A stretch of DNA of 37,382 nucleotides, from positions 1 to 37,382 of the forward strand of contig JAHLWZ010000964.1 in assembly GCA_020536535.1 (NCBI GenBank), written 5' to 3'. Each line of letters opens with the position of its first letter. Positions within the stretch are counted from its first letter, which is position 1. Shown here piece after piece: positions 1 through 17,543 of this stretch. This DNA comes from Pelomyxa schiedti (taxonomy: Eukaryota; Protista; Evosea). The position numbers and the translations under genes were made by a program. The notes under the pieces are model-generated. The model was not told where the DNA came from, did no database searches, and saw only the letters and a program-made list of their open reading frames with translations.

Positions 1-64
1 ATCCAATCCAATCCAATCCAATCCAATCCAATCCAATCCAATCCAATCCAATCCAATCCAATCC
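1..64. repeat. (ATCCA)n / (TGGAT)n tandem pentamer at the window start; candidate telomeric tract
   Basis: 12 perfect ATCCA units plus ATCC run from base 1. The C-rich strand is at the 5' end, as expected for a left telomere. Confidence 0.9.
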
Positions 65-250
65 CAGTCTCGCACAGCACAGTTGGCAGCCGCGCAAATT
101 CGCAGGGAAGCCAAAGGCTGTGGAAAACAATCAGTTGCCAGAACAAGAAAAAAAAAACCCGTACCGATGATGGAGGTGGGCCAGAGTAGTGATCAAAACA
201 AACAACACACACAGAGTTGGGGGTCAGTGGCGGAAGCGTACAGGTCACAT

Positions 251-700
251 GCTGAGATGACAGCCTGTCATCGCCACGGTAAATCCCCCTCTCCCTTTGT
301 ACACAGCCCATTTCCGGCACATTGATCAGTATTGCTGGTAGGTGGCTTCTTTTTTTCTTTCTCAGGCAGCCCACATATTATGCAGGTGGCGGACCTGCCT
401 ACAATCTATCACCAAGGTGCACCCCTTGCTCTTGCTCACCACCATAGCCTTCCCTGGTCCCACTAACATGCTGGCAGGCACCCGGAATGACCAAGCTTGG
501 AACAGTGAAGATGCCAATAGATGTTACCCGTTGTAGTCGGCTGTTGCCCACTCTGATATAGGCAAGTTGTCCTTTAACCCACGGTTCTCCTTCTCATCTC
601 ATCTACCCTTAGATCACCTCCAGTGGATGAGGTGGCAAGTAGGGAGAGCCTGCCACTGCTGAGTTGACAGCCTGTCACCAAGGTAAATCCCCCCCTTTGT
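251..700. repeat. Two copies (about 251-300 and 658-700) of a ~45-nt dispersed repeat with a palindromic core
   Basis: gctgagatgacagcctgtca..ggtaaatcccc..ctttgta matches gctgagttgacagcctgtca..ggtaaatcccccctttgta. The core TGACAG-C-CTGTCA is a perfect inverted repeat. Confidence 0.75.
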
Positions 701-1201
701 ATCATAACCCCACTCAACCATGATAGGTTGCGTTGGTACCCATGCTCCCAGCATTGCACACTACAGCACATTTCTGTATTTCTGGCACCTTGTGATACTG
801 GTAGGATGGCCTCTTTTCTCTTTTTCCGCATCTCACATACAATTTTTTTAGGTGGTGGACTTTTCACCTCACATCCACACCGGCCACAGAACCCGCTGCA
901 CGCCTGGGGCACAGTTGTCAACCCACAGGGAGTGTGTGAAGCTGCGCGGTGCATGGCACCCCTGGTGCCCGTGGTTACAGTAATAGATCAAGTTCTATTT
1001 ATTTTCTTCTGTTCTTTCAAACCCAACACCCTCTGCTGAACTTGAATTGTCAATATGTGTACTTTAGCAAGGACACCACAAAGCTAAAAACTTCTTTTTA
1101 TCAAGTCACTCACATCTTTCAGAGTGAAAAGCACAACCGGAGCATAGTCGTCAGTGTTTGGCTCCTGTATGAAAGCAATGAACAGAGAGCAAAGAGACAG
1201 A

Positions 1202-3810
1202 CTACATACTTAGAGCCTGCTCTCTGGCCGCTGTGGCAGCAGAATTTACATCACCACCCAGAACCCCTTCCAGGGTAGCAATCTCAGGGCAGCATGATAA
1301 TAGGTCGGGGCCGCTTATTACATGGTAGCCTTTGTTGAAAGAAATAGGCTGTGTGGGCAAGCAAGAAGTTATGGTATTCTGGGTAACGTGACTTTGCGAC
1401 AGGAAGAAATAGACACCTTGGAAGGATTTAGGTTGATACATGATTTGGGGGTACCATCTGTGGGTTCTTCTGATGCTATCTGGAAGAATAGCTTGAGCTC
1501 TTTTGTTATTACTGAAAGTGCACTTGACCGAAGCATTTTGAACTTCACTGTTATTTCAGAGTTGAGATGTGATATGAGGGGTGAGGCTTACAGTAAATGG
1601 CACAACACTGACCGTTGGGCACTTAAAGGAAGTTAGCAAATACCAGAACTGGCCAGTAGAGTACATTTGCGCTGAGCCTCAAACATATAATCAAAGAAGT
1701 GTCTGTTATAAGGTACATATATTCCAAGACCCAGAGTATGAGTAATACTAATGCTTTCCTGAGTCACTTCAGACACTGTAATGAAATTTGGGTGTAAATC
1801 TACAGAATATTGATCAGAAGCCTCAAACGTTTCCCACTACATACGTGGCACGCTATGACAATGGGCCATAGTGAGGCACTTAATCATTAGTGGACTTGAT
1901 GGTAAACTCAACTGCTCGAGATTTATGCCAATAAACGGTGAGTCTGCCTCCTCAACCATGAGACGGCATGTTGTTCGCTACATCTGGTAAATTAAACTTA
2001 CAACATAGGAACGTATTCACAAGAACGAATTGTTGCACTCGCGAAGGCAGATCCACTTGTAGCTGCAGCAAATTGTATGCATATGAAAAGGGCATGTAAA
2101 CATCAGCGCCATCTTTCTTTGGGATAATAAGTGCTAAATGGCTGGTGTTCAGTACGGTGCCAATGGCCATCAGATCAGTAAAATCTGGCTTTTCGTTATA
2201 CCATTCAATAATCTCAGTGGCTACCTTTTTTGTCAGCTTGAATGTGAACTTTTTCTCCAGAAATCCATGTCTTCTTCTTTGTGAGGAACAGCTTCCTTAG
2301 CTCAGATAGGGCTCCCCTCGTTGGAAAAAGAGGCCTGCAGTAAGGTGAATTATTAAACCAATAGAGTAACATACATATGCAACTCATTATACGTAATAAA
2401 TGCCCCTTTAGATGCTGTTTCTACGATATTTTCATGAGGGCCAGCTTTAATTCTGAGACAGTGAATGTGAACCCCACGAATGAAAAGAAAATCCAAACTT
2501 TGCGAGAAACTGTCTGAAGTACAGTGGGGATGCATAAAGTGCCACTGATACAAGATTAATATTGTGTTCTATTTCTAAGACGGAGGTGCCAAATAGACTC
2601 TCTACAGGATCAGTTTTAAAAAGGTAGCTTAGTAGCTCTATTGCAACAGGTGGTGTTATCATTGGGTTCTAGGAGTAAAGCTAAGGCAATTTATCAGGGA
2701 GTTTCGTTACCATAACGTTCAAGAAAGTCAGTGGCACGTTTTCTAATGTGCGAAGGATGGTTGGATCTTCACCGGTTACTAACAACATTTCCCCTTGACA
2801 CCTCATATCCGATATTTTTCTTGTTTGGTTTTTATAAGTGACAAAAGAAATGAGGAAAATACTCAAAGGTAGGAACAAATTTATCCAATATCCTTGCTTC
2901 GTGGACATGTAGTAGTACGTTTCTACAAGCACAGGCTTCGAAAATTGAGACACTTTCAAAGGGAGTTGTTTACCTTCTTCTATGAGGCTCATAGAGAAAA
3001 CATCTGCGAAGTCAACACGTCGGACTGCCCTTGCGGGATCCATTTGTCCCGCAATGTCCTCTGCGGCTTCGATACAATCATTGCCTGGACCTAGTTTTTC
3101 CGTGAAATCTGGATCAATTCAGGCGGTGATATACCCCAGACACAGGGTATAGCTCCAGTCTTCGACACAATGTCCGCGGCCGCAAGTTTATGCTCCAGGG
3201 TGATGATCCGTAAGTCTTCTGGATCAGGGCAAACTTTCCAGTATCTGACATCAAGCCTAACGCGGGCTGTGCATCAAAGTACTTGAATAACATGATACTG
3301 GCAAACTAGGTTGAATGGTTCTGTTGCGTTCCTTCTTGGACTAAACATTGGTGCTGGATGTAGTGGAGGCTCCAGTGGCTTTTCAGGTATTGGCTGTGCA
3401 TGTTGTACTTGTTGTTGGGGTGGAGGTGCTGGAGGTGGTGGAGGTTCGTTTACTTCAATGCGCGGTACCATCCGTCTGTAATACACGATCACCAGTAGAA
3501 GTTTGTACTGGTTGCTTTTGCCCTTCACTTTCTTTTTCATTTGGCTGCTCCATATGCTATCACCATCGAGCAAGGACTTCAAATAAGGGCCAATATCTGC
3601 ACTCCAATTCGCCACTTCAACTGCAACTTTTTCAGGTGTGCTTTCACCAGATTTTGGATTGGGCTGGATTTGAAGGGCCAATTCCTCCCCTTTACTCAGA
3701 AAAAGGTTCCACGTTTCGGAGCTAATGTCTTTGGGCTGTTCACCATCTATCTTTTGCACCAAAGCTTGATACTTTGGTTGTTTCACAGAGAAATAAGTAG
3801 TAAGCTGCAT
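1202..3810 (-). CDS. Multi-exon (about 14 exons) protein 'A': helical N-domain, Pro-rich linker, degenerate P-loop/STAND-like domain and REase-like C-terminus; paralog of 4031-7100
   Basis: Splices open with 13 canonical GT-AG introns. Motifs: YWKVCP, CVWGPG, CRNVLLHVHE, LLVTGEDP, LYASP, IGTVLN..IP..DG..VYMPF, IYVPYNRHFFDY, AIYLKFK, YHVISGPDLLSCCPE. Start codon uncertain; domain labels are inference. Confidence 0.75.
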
Positions 3811-4030
3811 GCTGAGTGAGAATAAGCATTACAACAAGAGCAGGCACAGCAACAAAAAAAACCCCAAACAATCAGTCTCAATGGAGGTTCATGCTAACTT
3901 GTCTTTTTCTTGTAATTGGTTTCAGCATCAAGCTATATGCTAAGATCAAATTAAATAAATAAAATCAGCATTTCGAAGAATTCTTTTTTCGTCGAAAGAT
4001 CAACGGCATGACAAATCAAAAACAAAAACA

Positions 4031-7000
4031 ATGGGTGATGTGGCCGACGTCGGCTCAGCTGCAGCGGTGCCACCGGCGAGTGCATCATCAAAGGTGGTTT
4101 CACCACCAATCAAAATCGAAATCGCGGCGTCGGCCGTCAGACCCAAGAAATTCAACGAGACGTTCATGGTTTCTAACCCAAATTTTGGCGTCATTCTGTC
4201 GTACGTCGACTGTGAAAGAGCTGTTCCAAATTGGTTTCTCTGGTTTTTAAACAAAGGGACATCCCTTGTTCCCACACTGAGCGCCAAAATGGCTTTGGAT
4301 GCTGCAATGGCTGTGGTCATTCCATCAGAACTGAACGGAGTTATTCAAGAAGAACAGGTTCTTCTAGAAGCCATCAATGACCCTGGCATTTGGCATGTTG
4401 AATCGCAGGGGACACGGTACACAGCACCAAATGTTCAGCCAGAGGTCAGACTACTGTTGAGCATTGCATATATTGCGCGTGTGCGGCAAACTCAAAATCA
4501 CATTCCCCAGACACCACCCCTTATGAGGAATTCCTTCTTCCCTCTTGGTAGCACCAAGTTCTGTGCAGTTCCTGACAAAGCCCTAGCATTCACCTCTTCG
4601 TCTCCGTTTTCACCAAAACTGCCACCACAACCTGAACTTGCAACAGCATCCTCATCTACTTCCTCCATCAATAACCTGCGGGAAAAAGTGCATCCAGTCA
4701 GACAGAGAGAAGCACTCGGAACAGATAACCCCCTTCTCTGTCAATCCCCAGATTCTATTCTCGAAATGTGGTGTACTGTTGCAAATAGATACCAGAGAGA
4801 ACATGAAGATGATAGTGACAGTGAAAATGAAGAGGCTGAGGATGGAGTCAAAACACATAAAAAACCAGCAGCACAAAGCTCTTCCATCCTCTCCCTTCTG
4901 TCATATTGGAAAGTAGTTCCTGAGAACTGTTTCAAAATCACTATAAAGACATATGAGTCCCGTCTTATTGCAGTAGAGATCCTGACAAAGAAACATGGAA
5001 ATTCAATAATATATGTTATTACAGGTGTGTCACCTCCTTGAATTCTTTCACTCACTTAAAAAAAGGAAAGAAAAAGCATTGCTCTTGCCAGATAGATATG
5101 TTGGTGGATGAATTGAACAAGGTGAAACAATTTTATAAGGCACGTTTGCCTTTTGAGTCTCTTATCAACACAGGTTACACTATTCGCTTCTCTTTTGTTT
5201 TCCCAAGTCCTCCTTCCTTTTGTAGGCAAAAATACCGATGATATACTAACTGACATGTTTTTACAAAATCCTGGCTGCACGTGTCAAAATATGTTGCTAC
5301 ATGTTTATGATGTTAAACATCCATCAACTGATAACTGTGGCCAATTGATAATAGATGCCTTCCAGTATAACTGATCCCTTTTTGTTTTGTACTAATTGTC
5401 TATAGAAAACTGAAGCAGATAATGCTAAGAGAAGTGTGTGTCATAATCTCCGGGAAAAATCCCCTTATCGAGGAAGAAGCTGGATTGCCCCTTTTGTATT
5501 ACAAGCCTATACTGGTTTTACACACTCTCACGGGGTTTGCTGATATAAATCTAGAATCCCATCATAACCTCCAGAATTGCCCATCAGATGATGTGGCATT
5601 TGTTTAAGGCTGTCAACAGTTCATCCCTTTGGGCTGATGAACCGGATAAAAGCAAAGAACAAATGAAAAAAACATCAGGGTCTCTTTATGCTCAGCCAGA
5701 TGTTATTCATCTTTTCCTGGAAATGTATGTAACAGGAAATGGAATTAAAAATAACAGTCAAAATAGGCTCAAGATATATTGTGGTGATGGACATGGAACA
5801 CCACCAGATATGAAGGCAATGATTGAAGCAGTGTGGAAAGAGAAGATGTAACTATAACTACTTTTCTCAGAGGCTTTTCTTAAGAATAACTGTCACACAG
5901 GATGAAAATAAAACCAGATCCCGTTATGGAGGGAAAGGAGATGATGGAACAACTAAGAGCTCAAATTCGTAGAGCGCCCATGGCAATAAGATATACCTCC
6001 ACTGCAGAAATTATAGAAATGCAAAAAAGTATCTTCATAAAATGAAAAAAAGTAACAAAAAACAGATGATGAGCTGATTCAGATTGGCAATGTTTTGAAT
6101 AATCTGGGTTTATCTTGTTTCATTCCATTGGAGGATGGCTATATTCGCATTTACCTTCCTTTTTGTTGGACAAGTACATTCTTCAGTGATAATGACGACA
6201 TCAAGGTTTTATTTCTGTCTGGATTTTTACAGTTTTTTAATCAAGTAAAAAGTCATCTCCTGATTCAAATTTTTGGCTAAGTACAAAACCCATAAATTTC
6301 TGGCTCTTCGAGAAGCGAATTAAACATGCTCTCACAATACCTGGATCATTTCTCTTGCATGTTTCTAACGCTAGAACTCCATTTCATTCACATTTCAGTG
6401 CGTAAAATCAAGTAGAGAACTTTAACCTAATGCCATTTAGATTTACGTGAAGGTTGCGTAACTTTTGACCTCTTAGAGACAATCCCTCCAGAGTGGATAT
6501 TGAGCAACCTCATTGGTTGCAAAAAAAATGACGTGATAAGTAGACAAAGCTCTGAGGCAACTGACTATGTTTCCATTATCCAAAAAAGTGTGTTTTACAA
6601 TGCCAAACCTTTTCTCAAATCCACTGTATATTGCCGATGCTTCAATACCTTCTTTTGCCTACCGTACAATATTACCAAATGAGACCCTGTGCTAACTTTA
6701 TTTTTAGATCAATATCAAGTCGCCGGATCATTGGATCTAGCTGCATTAGAGCAAAAGACTTTCAAATGGTGGGAAGCAGCCTTGCTTTGGCCTGAATCCT
6801 GTTGAGTTTCTTCTTTTCTTACCTCTTATTTATTATCTGATAGCAACATATACAATGATCGCCAGAAGTGAAATCCCTTTATCAACAAGGTTACGAGCTT
6901 TCTTGGAGGGAACTATCCGAGTCAAAAATTTGTACTGGAAACAATTCCAAATTCTTGCAGGCTCTGAGCTTTGGTGTTTTTGCCCGGAGGCTTTTATCCA

Positions 7001-7100
7001 ACTTGTAAGGCCAGCTGATAGACAACTACTATTCCGTACAATTTCTGTTCTTCATTTTAATCAATTTACGTTGCTTAGCACCGAACTCAAAAAGATGTAG
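4031..7100 (+). CDS. Multi-exon protein 'B', paralog of 1202-3810 with the same architecture
   Basis: Long first exon of about 331 codons, then short introns. Motifs: YWKVVP, YVITG, CQNMLLHVYD, VIISGKNP, LYAQP, IGNVLN..IP..DG..IYLPF, EATDY, AYHQYQ, FQILAGSELWCFCPE. One junction (about 6590-6629) lacks an AG acceptor. Confidence 0.75.
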
Positions 7101-7330: not shown

Positions 7331-7816
7331 ATGCTTAAGGGAGGGGAGAGGGCAGTGTGGGCGCGATGGCAGCTTGCCGCCTTGGCCCTTCCTGTATGCA
7401 GGTGCCAACGCCTCGTCACAGTGACATCGCTCTCTGTCTCGTCACAGCCTTCTTGTTCATCATCGTGTAAAAGACCAAGGATCGCAGCAACTGCAGCAAA
7501 AAGCACAGGGGCAACTATTCAAAGAAAGCCACTTACGCGCCCACAATTGCAAGTACAATCACCTGTGTTGGGAATGCCGCCTGTGAGTTTGCTGCCTTGG
7601 CCTGTATTGACTTGGATTGGACATGAGTGGGTCAATAACACTGCAAGGGTGGTGGCATTCAAGGTGCTAGTTGGTGAGGATAACAATAGGACTGAAGGGT
7701 GGGTTCAAGTGAGTGTATCACATACACTGGGGATCACTGTTCCATCAACTTCTATGACTCCCTCACCACATGTTTCATCTTCTCACGTTCCACCAAGGCA
7801 AAACACACAAGCATAG
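7331..7816 (+). pseudogene. Truncated member of a lineage-specific family (paralog of 16360-17543)
   Basis: Shares WARxQ, LP...IGxxW and VSHTLG motifs with 16360-17543, but stops shortly after VSHTLG where the paralog continues for about 290 aa. Confidence 0.55.
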
Positions 7817-7908
7817 ATTCCTTCCTGAAGTTGTAAACAAAAAAATTGTTCTGTTCCATCCATTCCACACCATTTGAGACAAAGAAAAGTAAGTAAAAGT
7901 TGTAAGTA

Positions 7909-9349
7909 TCAGGAGGTGTGTTCATGCTTAAGGTGATTGGAACCAGCTGTTGAAGGTACCTTGGGACACGCAGGGTGCTCTCTCCTGCAATGGTTAAAAT
8001 TTGATCAAATGAATTTGTTAGAAAGAAGTACCGCATGAAGGAGTATTCATAGGTCACAGCACCTAGGGAGGCACCTAAGAAGCTGCCAATTGTCCACACC
8101 CACGCATTGGAGAGGTCTCCCTGTGATTAGTGTCAGAATAACCCGCTTTTAGGTGATGGTTTACACACTTCCCAGATTGCCGGAGCAAGAGCCCTAAAGG
8201 GATTCATAGCTACACCGCCGGTTGCAACTCCAGCAAGAATATTGAGCATTGCAATGCAGGCGATAGCAATGGGGCCAAATACACCCCAGCCCCGGGGGTC
8301 AAAAGCAGTAGCAAAAGCGCCAAAGACAAGACCAAAGGTGCAATACCTGAAAAACGTTAGTATTACCCAGTGAAGAAAAGGTACACACATTTCAAAGAAG
8401 AACGCTCTTCCGGCTTGAAGGAATAAAGGGTGAGAACTGCAAGTTATAACAGCAATTAATTTACTTAGACAGACCGGATTGATCAGGCCCCAGTTTATTA
8501 TACTAATATCAGATATGAGAAAGAGTAAAAGAAAAATTGACCAACTGAGAGTGGTGCATCAATAGCCAACTTAATGAAACCCGCACCAGCAATAGCACCA
8601 AGAAACTGGCAAAAAACATAGGCACCAAATCTGACTAATGTTAGAGCAATCTCCCGGTAACCCAATAAAAGTATACCTCAAAAGGGTGATTCTTTTGCAT
8701 AACAGTGTCCCAAGGGACATTGCCGGGTTGAAATGTGCACCTGAAAAACAATAAGGTCGGTGCACAAAGCTAGTTGGGGTACTCCTACCACTTAGATGGG
8801 CCGTAGCATAAATAACAATAAGAATAAGTAATCCATGGTAGAGAACAATGACCAATGTGGCGGCCCCACCAGTAAGTATATCTTCAATTCCTTTTGTTCC
8901 GGCAAGGGAGAGAGCTTTGTTTTTTTAAGTACCAGCGGGGTATGAAAGTGGCAGATACCAACGCTAGGTTTTCAGATGAAAAGAGTATTGCTAAGAGAGG
9001 GACATACAAAAACTGAGTTGCCAGGAACTCAGCAAATAGTGCTCGATAAAAGTCAGGCTTGTACATCTCATCCAGGTTGAACAAGTTGTCCACATAGCAA
9101 CTTTCGTGCTTTTTCTCATCCTCTTCATGGTCCCTCTTTCTCCCTCCTCCTCGTCTCTCTCCCCTAGAGATGACAGTTAAAAAAAAAGAAGAAACCCAAC
9201 CAACCAACATGTTTTCATCACCCAAGAAAAAAAAAAAAGGCACGCAAACAGCTACAGTCAAAACTGAGCAACAACGACAACAACAACGGGTCAATTGTCT
9301 TGGGCTCCATCTCCACCACAGTTCCCCCTTCCTCTTCTGCCCTTGACAT
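7909..9349 (-). CDS. Aquaporin / MIP family channel
   Basis: RALFAEFLAT, HLSGAHFNPAMSL, QFLGAIAG, FEMYCTF, AMNPFRALAPAI, WVWTIGSFLGA; joined through canonical short introns. Confidence 0.95.
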
Positions 9350-9491
9350 GTCGTTGTTACACTTTCCTAGTATTTACAACCCCAACCGCCTTCGCAACTT
9401 CGTTTCGTTGTTGTATTGTGGTACAACAATCACTTTGGCTTGTTTTTTGTTGATTTCGCTTCGTTGTTATTACCGAGAAGAATATCTGCAG

Positions 9492-9728
9492 ATGAGGGTG
9501 GTTGTGCGGGGGATTGACGGGCCCAGCGTGGCGCTGGACAACATGCAGCCATCCGACACTGTCATGAGAGTGTTGCAAATGATGCAACGCAAGGACGGGA
9601 TACCGCCAGACCAGGTCAGGGTGGTGTTCAGGGGCGCCGAGTTAACTGATACTTCAATGACCTTGGCTCAATGCAACATCCATGACAACGACACTGTCCA
9701 TCTTGTATTAAGGTATACAAATTATTAA
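9492..9728 (+). CDS. Ubiquitin/NEDD8-like protein lacking the C-terminal Gly-Gly
   Basis: MRVVVRGIDG..PSDTV..KDGIPPDQVRVVFRGAEL..TL..NI..DTVHLVLR is a ubiquitin fold. The ORF ends LVLRYTNY. Confidence 0.85.
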   Translation: MRVVVRGIDGPSVALDNMQPSDTVMRVLQMMQRKDGIPPDQVRVVFRGAELTDTSMTLAQCNIHDNDTVHLVLRYTNY

Positions 9729-13365: not shown

Positions 13366-16191
13366 TCAACAGAGTAAGGGCGTGAGCAATGTGATTGCAC
13401 AGGCGGCGGACATCCTGAGGTTCTTCTGTGGGTTCATCATGTCAATTAGCACGCTCACGAAAGCCTCCACTCGCGGGTCGGGTGGTTTGGTAGGAACAAA
13501 GGGAGGCGGCAGTGGGAACGAATCCACGAGGGCTTTGGTTGTGAACCGGCACATGTCACCATTGAGGCGGCTGCCGATGAACTTGTGGTTGGCCGGCAGC
13601 AGTGCGTTGTAGAAAGTGAGGGCGAGGCTGAACGAATCGCACTTTGAGAGCGGGAACAGCTGGGAACCGGCCCTGGGGTTGTTGATGAATGACATTATCT
13701 CTGGTGGGATGGTGCCGAGGTTGCCCCATGTGTTGCCGGTTGGTGTCAGCTGTGCAGCCATTTGGCCTTGTGTGTCTTTGATGCACTCCTGCGCCATCCC
13801 AAAGTCAATCAGAGTGAGTTTCTGTGTCGGTGGGTCGACGACGATGTTGTCCTCCTTGATGTCTCTGTGGATTGAGGTCAGAGGATTGTAAAAAGAAAAA
13901 AGAAAAATGGAGAACCTGTGAACAATTGCATTGGACTCAAGGTGGTTGATTGCGGAAAGAGCTTGGTGAAAAAGGTTCAGTGTGGCACCAACCATCTGCC
14001 GCGGGGGCAATGATGACAAAAGTGACTGTTTATACCCCGATAAAGGTATACCACCACAGGGCATGAAGAACACAAATGACCGATGGTCCTTGGCCCACTC
14101 TTCATAGGCTGGCTTGTCATGAAGCAGTTCAAGGAAGTCTTGTGGCAAGCTGAGTTGGAGTCAATTGAAGTCAAGGAGGACCCAAAAAACCTTGGGATGA
14201 CAAAAGCACCGAGAGGATGAATGACATTCTGGTGATGTGGGATCAATGCAAGCGTCTGAACCTCTGTCATGTATTTGTTCCTCAGCAGTGTTTGTGTGAC
14301 AATTTCATCCATATTAAACTGGAGCTTCATGACCATCATCTGCGGTTCCAGTGAAGCCTTGCTTCCCTGGAACTGGACTTTGAATGCTGCACCATAAGAT
14401 CCTGTTCCAAGGAGCTCTTTCACAGTGAACTGTGAGATTCCGGCTGGAATCAGTGATGTCATGGTGCTGATTGTTTTCTGTAGTGTTGAAAAAAATCCTC
14501 CCAATTGGTTATACCTTGTATTGTGCCAACTCTTCTTCCCACTTCTGCTGGGTAGCTTGGTGTTGAACTTTCAAATTGTTGTTGGTGGTCTCACACTCTG
14601 ACAACCGGGTTCGAAGAAGGGTGTTCTCATCCTGCAGCTAAAAAAAAATAAGATATTATTAATTGGAAAGAGAAGCAACCTTCCTCAAATATGTCTTCAC
14701 TGTTTCGACAATTATTTCAATTTCTTTCCCTTGGACAATCCCAGTTTTGGCGGGACTGTGTATTGTGAAAAGAGGGTAAGGAGAACAAAAAGAGCACATA
14801 AAACTTGCAAATTCATTCCTCAGCAGTGAAAGCACTTTGGTGATGCCTGTCAGCTAATGTAGTGACAATCTCAGAAGGAGGGAAAAATAAACAAGTATAC
14901 TTGAGGAGGTGTGGCAGGTAGACTTAGTGGATGTTCCTTTACTTCAACCAACGGACTGGCAACTGCAGTAGGCTCTTTTTTCTCTGGTACGACATTGGAG
15001 TTTGGTTCCAGAATTCCATTTACGCCACTACCAGTAGCTGCATTTAATTCTGCAGTGGAACCACCAACTCCACTTGGTGTGGCCTCTTCTGCAACAGGGA
15101 TTTTCTGATATGATTATTCATTAAAGACAGTTCTCAGGGTGTTGGTTGTTAGCACTTCCTTACTTCTTTTTCAGTTATTACTCTGACAAATTTGGCTGGA
15201 AACCAGCCAACATCCCCATCAAGTTCCCCCTCCCACCATCCACTGTCATCCTTGATTTTCGTTAGGTTACCAGGAGGAGGAACAAAGGCAACTGTTCGTA
15301 AGACAGCAATTATGTCACCCTTGTGAAAGCCAAGCTCATCTACCCCTTCCGCTTTAAACTGAAAGTCAGCAGTGGCCTTGTATTTTATTTTCTCCTTTTA
15401 TTGTGATGAGTAAGGCACACAAAGTTCGTTCTCCATACATCTGGCAGAAAAAAAATTTAGTGGTATTCATTGATGATGGAAATAACCCTCTGGTAGCCTC
15501 TCTGCAAAGTTGCTTGGAAAAAGACCGATGGCTCCATCCAACTCTCCCTTAAACCAGCCACTGGGATTGTCTTCTAACACATTGAAAATATCACCATCTT
15601 TGAAGGACAATTCAAAGGGATCCTAGAATTGGAATTACCGGGTGACACAAAGGAAAAAGAGAAACCTCAGCATCATAATCATGCCTTGCCCTCATCTATT
15701 CACGAAGTTATAAATCATAAAAAGTTTCAAAGGAGGTAAACCCTGAACAGTACGGGGGTTGGTTGTGGGGAACCCGGTGTTACTACAGGAAATAGAGATG
15801 GCCACTTGCCCCGTTGCTGTTTCACCAGAGTTATTATCGTGACTGTTCCACGGTTTCTGGAAACCTTATATTCCCACTTGCATTTGCCTGGTTTCACAGC
15901 AGCGTACAGCGTGCCCTAACAGTGTTGGTGTAACTAACAAAAAGAAAATGACGTCGCATTACGCCAAGAAGTACCTCACAAATCGGAGCAGCACCCTTGA
16001 ACCCAGCCCTCAATGTAGTAGCAGTGATCACAACGTCTATGTCTCCTTTATTTTTGTTCTGAGGGGGCCTGAACCTCACTGTAACGGTGCTGCCGCCCTG
16101 CAACCACCAAAATGTTGGTGGGACTTTTCGTGACTGAAAAAAACACATTACGAGTGTGTACAAATAGAATAAGGGTTCTCACTGTGGCCAT
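13366..16191 (-). CDS. CS(p23/NudC)-SH3-SH3-coiled-coil-Ser/Thr kinase
   Basis: CS domain: FWWLQGGSTVTVRF..GTLYAAVKP..KW..LVK..KWPSL. SH3 domains: ARHDYDAEDPFELSFKDGD..GWFKGE..GLFPSNF and DELGFHKGD..GWWEGE..GWFPAKFV. Kinase: GTGSYG, MK, HRDIKEDN, DFG, PPE. All join in frame through short introns. Confidence 0.88.
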
Positions 16192-16359: not shown

Positions 16360-17543
16360 TCAGAATGGGAGGCACGAGAGAAAATTTTTGCTGTACACTT
16401 CCTGGCAGGGCAGGGGCAGAGGCTGGCACCACAAACAAAGGCCAGTTAGGGTGTCTACAACACTAATGTTATCACGCCCCTGTGTTACAATGAACCCATT
16501 GGCAATTCTTGACACTGTGCCCAGGAAGTCTTCAGGGATGATGCAACAGGGATGCTCAAAATCTTCTGTTGAGAACACATAGAAGGCCGGAACTGACTCC
16601 CCAGGGAAGAAATACCTTCCCTCAAAGAAGTGGAATGTATCCACTTTGATTGGCTTGGAGCTGCAGCGCCTCATCACTTTGTTTGTACACAGTTGCATCA
16701 AAACATGATCGTTATTCCCGCTCTGCGCATCGCAATACATCTGCCTCACAATGATTCCATGCTTGAAAGACAAATATACGCCCTTGCACACTGTGTCCAG
16801 CTTGAACTCCTGAGTGACTGAAAACACCCCCAGCTTGTGTGTCTTCTCCAAGTCAACAAGCCACAAGAAATTCCTCTCCTCACCCTTCTTCACAGACACA
16901 CATGCTTGGTTCCCGCTCATCAGGTCCATCCACACCAGCTTCTCCCCCTCCGTCATTGTCACCCTGCTGACAACTCTTTCGCCCTGCATAGGCAGTGGGA
17001 TTTGCCACAGCTCCACCGCCTGGTTCTTCAGTGCATACACCACCTGCCACTCATCATTCCTCAGGCACCTTGTCTTCCGTTGCAGATAAGGTTCCGCCAG
17101 CCGGGCCCTCACCCTCCCAGTTTCCGAATCCGCGATGTGCGGGCACTCGCCGGCTCTCCAACTCGAAGCCACGACGCAACCGCGGTCTACCCACCCAATC
17201 ACTTCCACCAGTGCCTGTCTCCTCTGCGAATGCCAAACTTTCAGCACCCCCAGTGTGTGCGACACACTCAGGAACCAGTACCCGACGCAATCCTCCCAGA
17301 TTCGCGCCTGGTTCGGAAAGTCGGTGCCGACGGCTATCCTGCGGCGGGCGCCCATTATCCACTTCCGGCCGATTTCGTCGGCGACCACGCTGCTGGGCAG
17401 CACGGCGAGTGGAGAGCGAGAGGCACACCAACAACGCAAAAGCAAACGAACTGGTGACGTGCCCATCTCACGTTCTCCGCCTCTGGGAACTTAACACGCC
17501 CGCTTATCAACTCACCCCCAACATCAATACACCCTTCACTCAT
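16360..17543 (-). pseudogene. Lineage-specific family protein (F-box-like start plus beta-rich body) with an apparent frameshift near codon 35
   Basis: Intronless 368-codon frame. The family N-terminal motif WARHQFV lies in a different frame (17355..17555 ORF) from SPLAVLPSSVVADEIGRKW..VSHTLG. Confidence 0.55.

Follow-up and report, generated by a model that had tools for sequence, protein, structure and literature searches.

A head-to-head pair of paralogous genes

Contig C964 of Pelomyxa schiedti, a free-living, non-pathogenic anaerobic amoeba, was analysed over its entire length of 37,382 nucleotides (JAHLWZ010000964.1; hereafter the window). Near its start, two genes lie head to head, gene A on the minus strand and gene B on the plus strand (Table 1). 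They are paralogous along their length, as had been claimed in a preliminary description made from the sequence alone. In an exon-by-exon alignment, the two proteins are 24% identical (129/538 residues), with a summed z of 15.8 against 500 shuffles, far beyond chance; the public models align in blastp with E=8e-10. Twelve introns, where about nine had been counted, are common to A and B, in identical order and with identical phases (1,1,2,0,2,2,1,0,1,1,1,1). Three exons have the same length in both genes (109, 170 and 93 nt), and the second common intron is displaced by ~10-17 codons. No nucleotide similarity between the two genes is left. An old inverted duplication is supported, and the exon coordinates place the start codons 220 bp apart, as described. 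Overall, the head-to-head paralog pair is confirmed.

Exon coordinate bookkeeping gave frames that are open throughout in A and B, with canonical introns of 37-53 nt. The boundaries of the first intron of A are uncertain by a few codons either way. The public model of this gene starts late, downstream of the N-terminal header, and reads one exon in a different frame; the start at 3810 is favoured by the family alignment. An apparent frameshift in A near 2290 was dropped, as an intron at 2224-2185, found at a family position, restores the open frame. The public model of B omits the 45-nt mini-exon in frame.

Table 1 Features of the gene pair and of the window start
Feature	Position	Strand	Description
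Gene A (Pelo_14820)	1202..3810	-	14 exons, 684 aa
Gene A exons 1-7	3810-3299, 3256-3135, 3090-2974, 2935-2863, 2819-2711, 2668-2499, 2452-2375	-	
Gene A exons 8-14	2334-2225, 2184-2027, 1977-1845, 1799-1665, 1621-1592, 1547-1455, 1416-1202	-	
A N-terminal header	3466..3807	-	~110 aa, family-specific, probably helical; followed by Pro-rich linker; basic KKK patch
A pseudo-AAA+ domain	2335..3256	-	strand-Gly lacking GK[ST]; no DE pair in Walker B; sensor-1 strand and helical lid present
A winged-helix-like segment	2184-2027	-	
A winged-helix-like and REase-like region	1202..2184	-	lacks helix Glu and strand-2 Asp; predicted dead
Spacer between start codons	3811..4030	.	220 bp; candidate bidirectional promoter
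Gene B (Pelo_14821)	4031..7100	+	13 exons, 851 aa, 45-nt mini-exon counted in
Gene B exons 1-7	4031-5024, 5066-5173, 5226-5364, 5406-5514, 5555-5724, 5767-5847, 5901-6028	+	
Gene B exons 8-13	6066-6205, 6253-6397, 6441-6587, [6619-6663], 6708-6800, 6844-7100	+	
B mini-exon	6619..6663	+	45 nt, conserved in B-type paralogs; no upstream AG acceptor (CAA instead)
B N-terminal header	4148..4486	+	homologous to A header; followed by low-complexity acidic linker to ~4900
B pseudo-AAA+/STAND-like domain and lid	4904..5900	+	Walker A and Walker B degenerate
B helix and two-strand β-hairpin wing (winged-helix-like)	6066..6205	+	pLDDT ~80 in model
B REase-like region	6253..7100	+	helix Glu, strand-2 Asp, strand-3 Gln kept; predicted active
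Pentamer microsatellite (1-64) and flank	1..121	.	overlaps contig C968 by 121 nt
Dispersed non-coding repeat	250..966	.	further copies close to the family genes of C666 and within the spacer of the C642 pair
pLDDT, predicted local distance difference test; REase, restriction endonuclease.

Domain organization of A and B

Both proteins begin with a header of ~110 aa that is common to 12 family members. Judged by eye, it is probably helical and has no obvious signal peptide. Searches of Pfam, of PDB sequences and of protein databases returned no known match to the header, which is not ubiquitin-like (Ubl-like). Several B types have a basic RKR patch in front of the header, which suggests nuclear import.

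The central domain shows a strand-Gly element, a Walker B-like strand, a sensor-1 strand and a lid, an order that fits AAA+/STAND proteins. Walker A (GxxxxGK[ST]) and Walker B (hhhhDE) are degenerate in 14/14 members in which the region is readable. The multi-exon alignments feeding AlphaFold were poor, hence weak models: pLDDT is 58 for the NTPase-like domain of B, with ~80 for the lid. The top 30 VIA structural hits are all AAA+ proteins, matched mostly in the lid, with Z<=7, counted as middling by the tool. Cdc6/Orc1 is one of the hits with the longest alignments, at 220 residues and Z 5.4. Atlas structural clusters were of AAA-lid, NB-ARC (TM 0.33/0.55) and MalT type, and Foldseek on the AlphaFold model of the B domain found nothing at E<=0.001. 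A likely assignment is an AAA+/STAND-like domain with dead Walker motifs, extended to A because of its homology to B. The STAND/AAA+ architecture first proposed agrees with the motif order and with structural hits that score low but are consistent.

Downstream, B has a helix and a hairpin wing, for which the structure search with the C-terminal model gave no winged helix-turn-helix match. The C-terminal region then presents a Glu on a helix, an Asp at the start of a strand and a Gln or Lys on the next strand. Glutamine at the lysine position occurs in the REases of Crinkler-RHS (CR) proteins. Most non-A members, at identities of 25-30%, conserve Glu, Asp and Gln in the order of a REase, and the E/D/Q set is present in the paired B genes as well as at C1301, C1314, C1451, C156 and C267. 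The REase motif order is E...D...ExK (PMC11342252). In the A types, whose alignment is less certain here, the Glu and the Asp are absent. No search (Pfam, structure searches) returned a REase match, and both the winged helix and the REase are inferred mainly from motifs.

A family with recurring A+B pairs

The P. schiedti genome (52,367,397 bases in 5337 contigs) was searched with exon profiles, which place the family at no fewer than about 20 loci, a lower bound. Sixteen family genes were modelled, their exons being joined as predictions for alignments and trees, and most of them have intron positions in common. Further matches lie in the genome (G000) at C948:11375, C1477:3930, C1505:1921, C912:907 and C2731:525, and may hold additional pairs. 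Protein databases, PDB sequences and a metagenome search gave no family homolog outside P. schiedti; the protein databases returned the models of the window alone.

Head-to-head pairs were found at three loci, C964, C642 and C630, with spacers of 220, ~1400 and 495 bp, which supports the recurrence that had been put forward for testing. Each pair consists of one A-type and one B-type gene. No conserved spacer sequence was found among the three. Between these lineages, the B proteins are 25-33% identical to each other. All A-type genes for which upstream sequence is available (3/3) are paired; their frames are open and they are 16-24% identical to B. No intact unpaired A gene was found among the modelled family members. 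B types are under purifying selection (dN/dS 0.24-0.37).

Other loci show decay or truncation. At C564, a segmental duplication of the C642 locus has left a decayed fourth copy of the pair: a deletion has taken out the spacer, the 5' end of B and all of A except 80 bp, and the remaining B lacks the strand-2 Asp. C1314 is a B type without the Walker region. C798 is an A type that loses its 5' end to a multicopy repeat lying at the edge of the contig. This repeat (L034:1-125), present in at least 40 copies at contig ends, is a collapsed high-copy element. At C867 and C1451, less than 1 kb of upstream sequence is available, too near the contig end to judge pairing. A minus-strand open reading frame (ORF) at the start of C1451, considered as a partner header, was not recovered by a leave-one-out profile and was not counted.

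Some contigs were treated as variants of known loci. C2806, 95-98% identical to the A/B junction of the window, was taken for a variant of this locus and not for a fourth pair. It carries (L002, ~336-888) an insert of ~550 bp at window position ~3888, seen nowhere else in the assembly and apparently bordered by a 5-bp duplication, which would stretch the 220 bp spacer to ~780 bp. Similarly, C2991 (L003) was not kept as a separate locus: compared with L005:3947-5130, it is a bubble variant of the C642 B gene with an open header frame. Unlike C2991, the C642 copy of this header has five small gaps with frameshifts, which may be allelic or an assembly error. A second copy (96%) of the end of the C642 spacer and the start of its A gene is found at the far end of the contig (G000:C642:18533-18999) and may belong to a further duplicated pair that the assembly truncated. 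Finally, the 3' flanks of the C1451 gene (L032:3800-6152) and of the C630 A gene (L035:237-2322) are 82-86% identical over ~1.5 kb; this may reflect a shared mobile element or an old segmental duplication.

History of the pair

B types form a clade, with support of 97/96 under a mixture model and 98/97 under LG+G4. Four A types group weakly outside it (73/85, 66/93), on long branches, and share a Phe...Glu-Gln-Leu..Pro motif in the first REase-like helix. The separate A and B clades anticipated earlier are therefore firm for B and weak for A. A types diverge faster than B types in the tree. For both C642 (p-AU 0.0009) and C630 (p-AU 0.0006), trees in which the partner arose locally are rejected. 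The simplest history would be one ancient inverted duplication giving the A/B pair; later copying would have involved the whole pair, which persisted as B drifted to its present divergence.

Possible roles of the pair

We tentatively favour, at somewhat less than even confidence, a reading in which A restrains or regulates B within a hetero-oligomer made from a shared promoter. The three A+B pairs, the B clade and the E/D/Q set kept in B and absent in A support it. The family would be a lineage-specific, Crinkler/RHS-like one that combines a helical header, a dead AAA+/STAND-like domain, a winged helix and a REase-like region. Both genes would be transcribed from the short common spacer, and the dead AAA+ modules would serve as assembly surfaces. 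B would act as a nuclear DNase, while A, its dead paralog, would co-assemble with B and hold it in check. Toxin and antidote would then derive from one ancestor, and may be directed against invading DNA or endosymbionts, or may form a selfish element.

Several observations weigh against this reading. Pairing is known from one genome, in which 6/16 modelled genes are in pairs and 10/16 are not. The two genes at C666 and the members at C156 and C267 stand in tandem or alone, and some of those at C1451, C156, C267 and C666 keep REase residues while being unpaired, tandem or near a contig end. At C1301, an intact-looking B-type gene, 74% identical in nucleotides to C630 B with a dN/dS of 0.24, has no A upstream. 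A putative toxin gene thus looks intact with no antidote in cis, which weakens a strict toxin-antidote reading; an A protein acting in trans may protect this solo B. At C564, the deletion alone accounts for the decay of B. In the tree, the A group is weakly supported and long-branched, and sisterhood of the A and B genes of the window is not rejected (p-AU 0.13). The mini-exon of the window B gene has no canonical acceptor. In addition, the C-terminal half of B is modelled at pLDDT 49, unusable, so that the REase fold, and with it the nuclease-like C-terminus first described, is predicted from motifs. The idea of a paired system itself has three A+B pairs in its favour and is weakened by the unpaired genes and the lone C1301 B.

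Part of these data would fit linkage without interaction, in which an old inverted duplicate stayed together as breakpoints are rare within a spacer of 0.2-1.4 kb and the promoter is shared; A and B would be independent, and A a non-catalytic DNA binder. The ten unpaired genes agree with this, as do the lack of spacer conservation, the kilobase segmental duplications at these loci and the compactness of the genome, where divergent neighbours are common. However, A was kept beside B in three lineages with such divergent B proteins, and no intact unpaired A was found; we regard passive linkage as unlikely. The same pairing and the same A/B asymmetry could also denote an obligate asymmetric enzyme, with A as a structural or specificity subunit needed by B and not as an inhibitor. 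The faster divergence of A types would be as for specificity subunits, the Cdc6/Orc1 structural hit likens the pair to the hetero-oligomer of the origin recognition complex, and CifB mixes active and inactive REase domains, the dead ones helping to bind DNA (PMC11342252). Nevertheless, one B looks intact with no partner and some unpaired outgroup members have the E/D/Q set, which suggests that the nuclease form can work without an adjacent A, and we consider this enzyme an unlikely explanation.

More distant from a conflict system, both proteins may be dead, or their C-terminal half may not be a REase, and they would form a domesticated chromatin or replication scaffold. Dead Walker motifs throughout, the lack of any REase match and a window B gene that may skip its mini-exon point that way. 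Conversely, the REase order of Glu, Asp and Gln in most non-A members despite their low identity, the birth-and-death turnover with truncated copies, which fits conflict genes, and the Crinkler and archaeal-ATPase clusters among the Atlas neighbours make a scaffold improbable. Returning to regulation of B by A, its furthest-reaching form would be a eukaryotic two-gene toxin-antidote or helper-regulator cassette, with a Crinkler-like nuclease and its dead paralog head to head under one promoter, assembled through pseudo-AAA+ domains, spread as a unit and, in a free-living amoeba, convergent on plant paired nucleotide-binding leucine-rich repeat receptors (NLRs), with a nuclease as output. This is a possible but doubtful proposal.

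CR proteins are predicted to act as nucleases in the nucleus, which raises the question of how a cell that carries them escapes damage to itself. A recurring pair of predicted live and dead paralogs is a concrete candidate answer, which the three natural cognate pairs could test. If linkage is passive, the family is merely a lineage-specific expansion of degenerate CR-like genes.

Window start, repeats and neighbouring genes

The window start had been taken for a candidate chromosome end. Positions 1-121 are identical (100%) to C968:35958-36078, with ~36 kb of C968 sequence upstream of the repeat, and 121 is the largest SPAdes k-mer used in the P. schiedti assembly (PMC8887013). Because the overlap equals this k-mer, the telomere reading is rejected as improbable, and the pentamer array is most likely a chromosome-internal microsatellite at which the contig breaks off. 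A subtelomeric location of the family is likewise not supported, with paralogs C630, C666 and C267 lying inside long contigs.

Copies of the dispersed repeat (window 250-966, L041:277-1341 and L005:5392-5798) are 70-88% identical and adjoin three family loci; the repeat holds an internal 52-bp duplication. Beyond B, the neighbours are ordinary (window ~7750-9294, minus; 9300-9728, plus; 13366-14504, minus): one encodes an aquaporin (MIP) and is convergent with B, one is ubiquitin-like and one encodes a protein kinase. An intronless ORF of 368 aa at 16360-17466 (minus) has no Pfam match and is probably a member of a Pelomyxa-specific expanded family; another intronless ORF of similar appearance is found upstream of C1301 (L036:7213-8184).

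Comparison with known systems

CR proteins with an NTPase, a helix-turn-helix (HTH) and a REase were reportedly described by Zhang et al. in 2016. This combination makes up about a quarter of CR C-termini (PMC5289972). The Pelomyxa family resembles CR proteins by its predicted order of header, P-loop NTPase, HTH and REase-like domain (PMC11342252 and PMC5289972), its probably helical lineage-specific header, its expansion in a free-living eukaryote and its many broken copies. It differs by the lack of a Crinkler/RHSP profile match, by dead Walker motifs, by a header that is not Ubl, by 12 conserved introns and by recurring divergent A+B pairs. Neither the public models nor 140 exon pieces matched any Pfam family, the CR profile PF20147 included; the CR profile PF07999 matched nowhere, controls included, and so carries no information. 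As a lead only, the language-model (Atlas) neighbours of the B core are Mucoromycota hypothetical, archaeal-ATPase and Crinkler clusters (0.87-0.90, with 0.87 for Crinkler). Membership of the Crinkler/RHS class, proposed at the outset, is thus likely but not established, because no profile or database homolog matches and intact Walker motifs are lacking. Among the structural and Atlas hits are Cdc6/Orc1 and archaeal MJ-type STAND ATPases, in which an AAA+ domain with a lid is followed by a winged helix, with or without a REase; unlike them, the Pelomyxa family lacks intact Walker motifs and carries a header and a nuclease-like tail.

In the plant NLR pairs RPS4/RRS1 and RGA4/RGA5, two STAND paralogs lie head to head and differ in role, the one keeping the other in check. 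A and B are likewise a head-to-head pair drawn from two groups, of which the A group is weakly supported. In contrast, Pfam finds no NB-ARC, LRR, TIR, CC or integrated decoy in either, both partners have the same architecture with dead NTPases, and the output would be a nuclease. The A/B pair is not an NLR pair, and the sensor/helper analogy drawn earlier gains no specific support.

Selfish systems with CR-related REase toxins include CifA/CifB of Wolbachia and Medea1 of Tribolium (PMC11342252), and free-living eukaryotes are reported to carry selfish genes derived from CRNs (PMC12957317). CifA/CifB is also an adjacent two-gene unit in which active and inactive REase domains act together. However, its genes are in tandem and CifA is unrelated to CifB, whereas the antidote candidate in Pelomyxa is a paralog over its full length; Medea1 consists of one gene. 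In the literature searched, where Zhang et al. 2016 is represented by later papers, no description of head-to-head CR pairs was found. The recurring arrangement is real and apparently undescribed, within a probably known kind of protein. A precedent for restraint of B by A exists in Phytophthora sojae, where the dead CRN of the PsCRN63/PsCRN115 paralogs suppresses cell death caused by the live one and the two heterodimerise (PMC4886637). These proteins differ by four residues in the functional region and are delivered to the host, whereas A and B are ~24% identical, belong to two old groups and lie head to head. If A does restrain B, the head-to-head logic of plant NLR pairs would have arisen independently in an amoebozoan STAND-like family.

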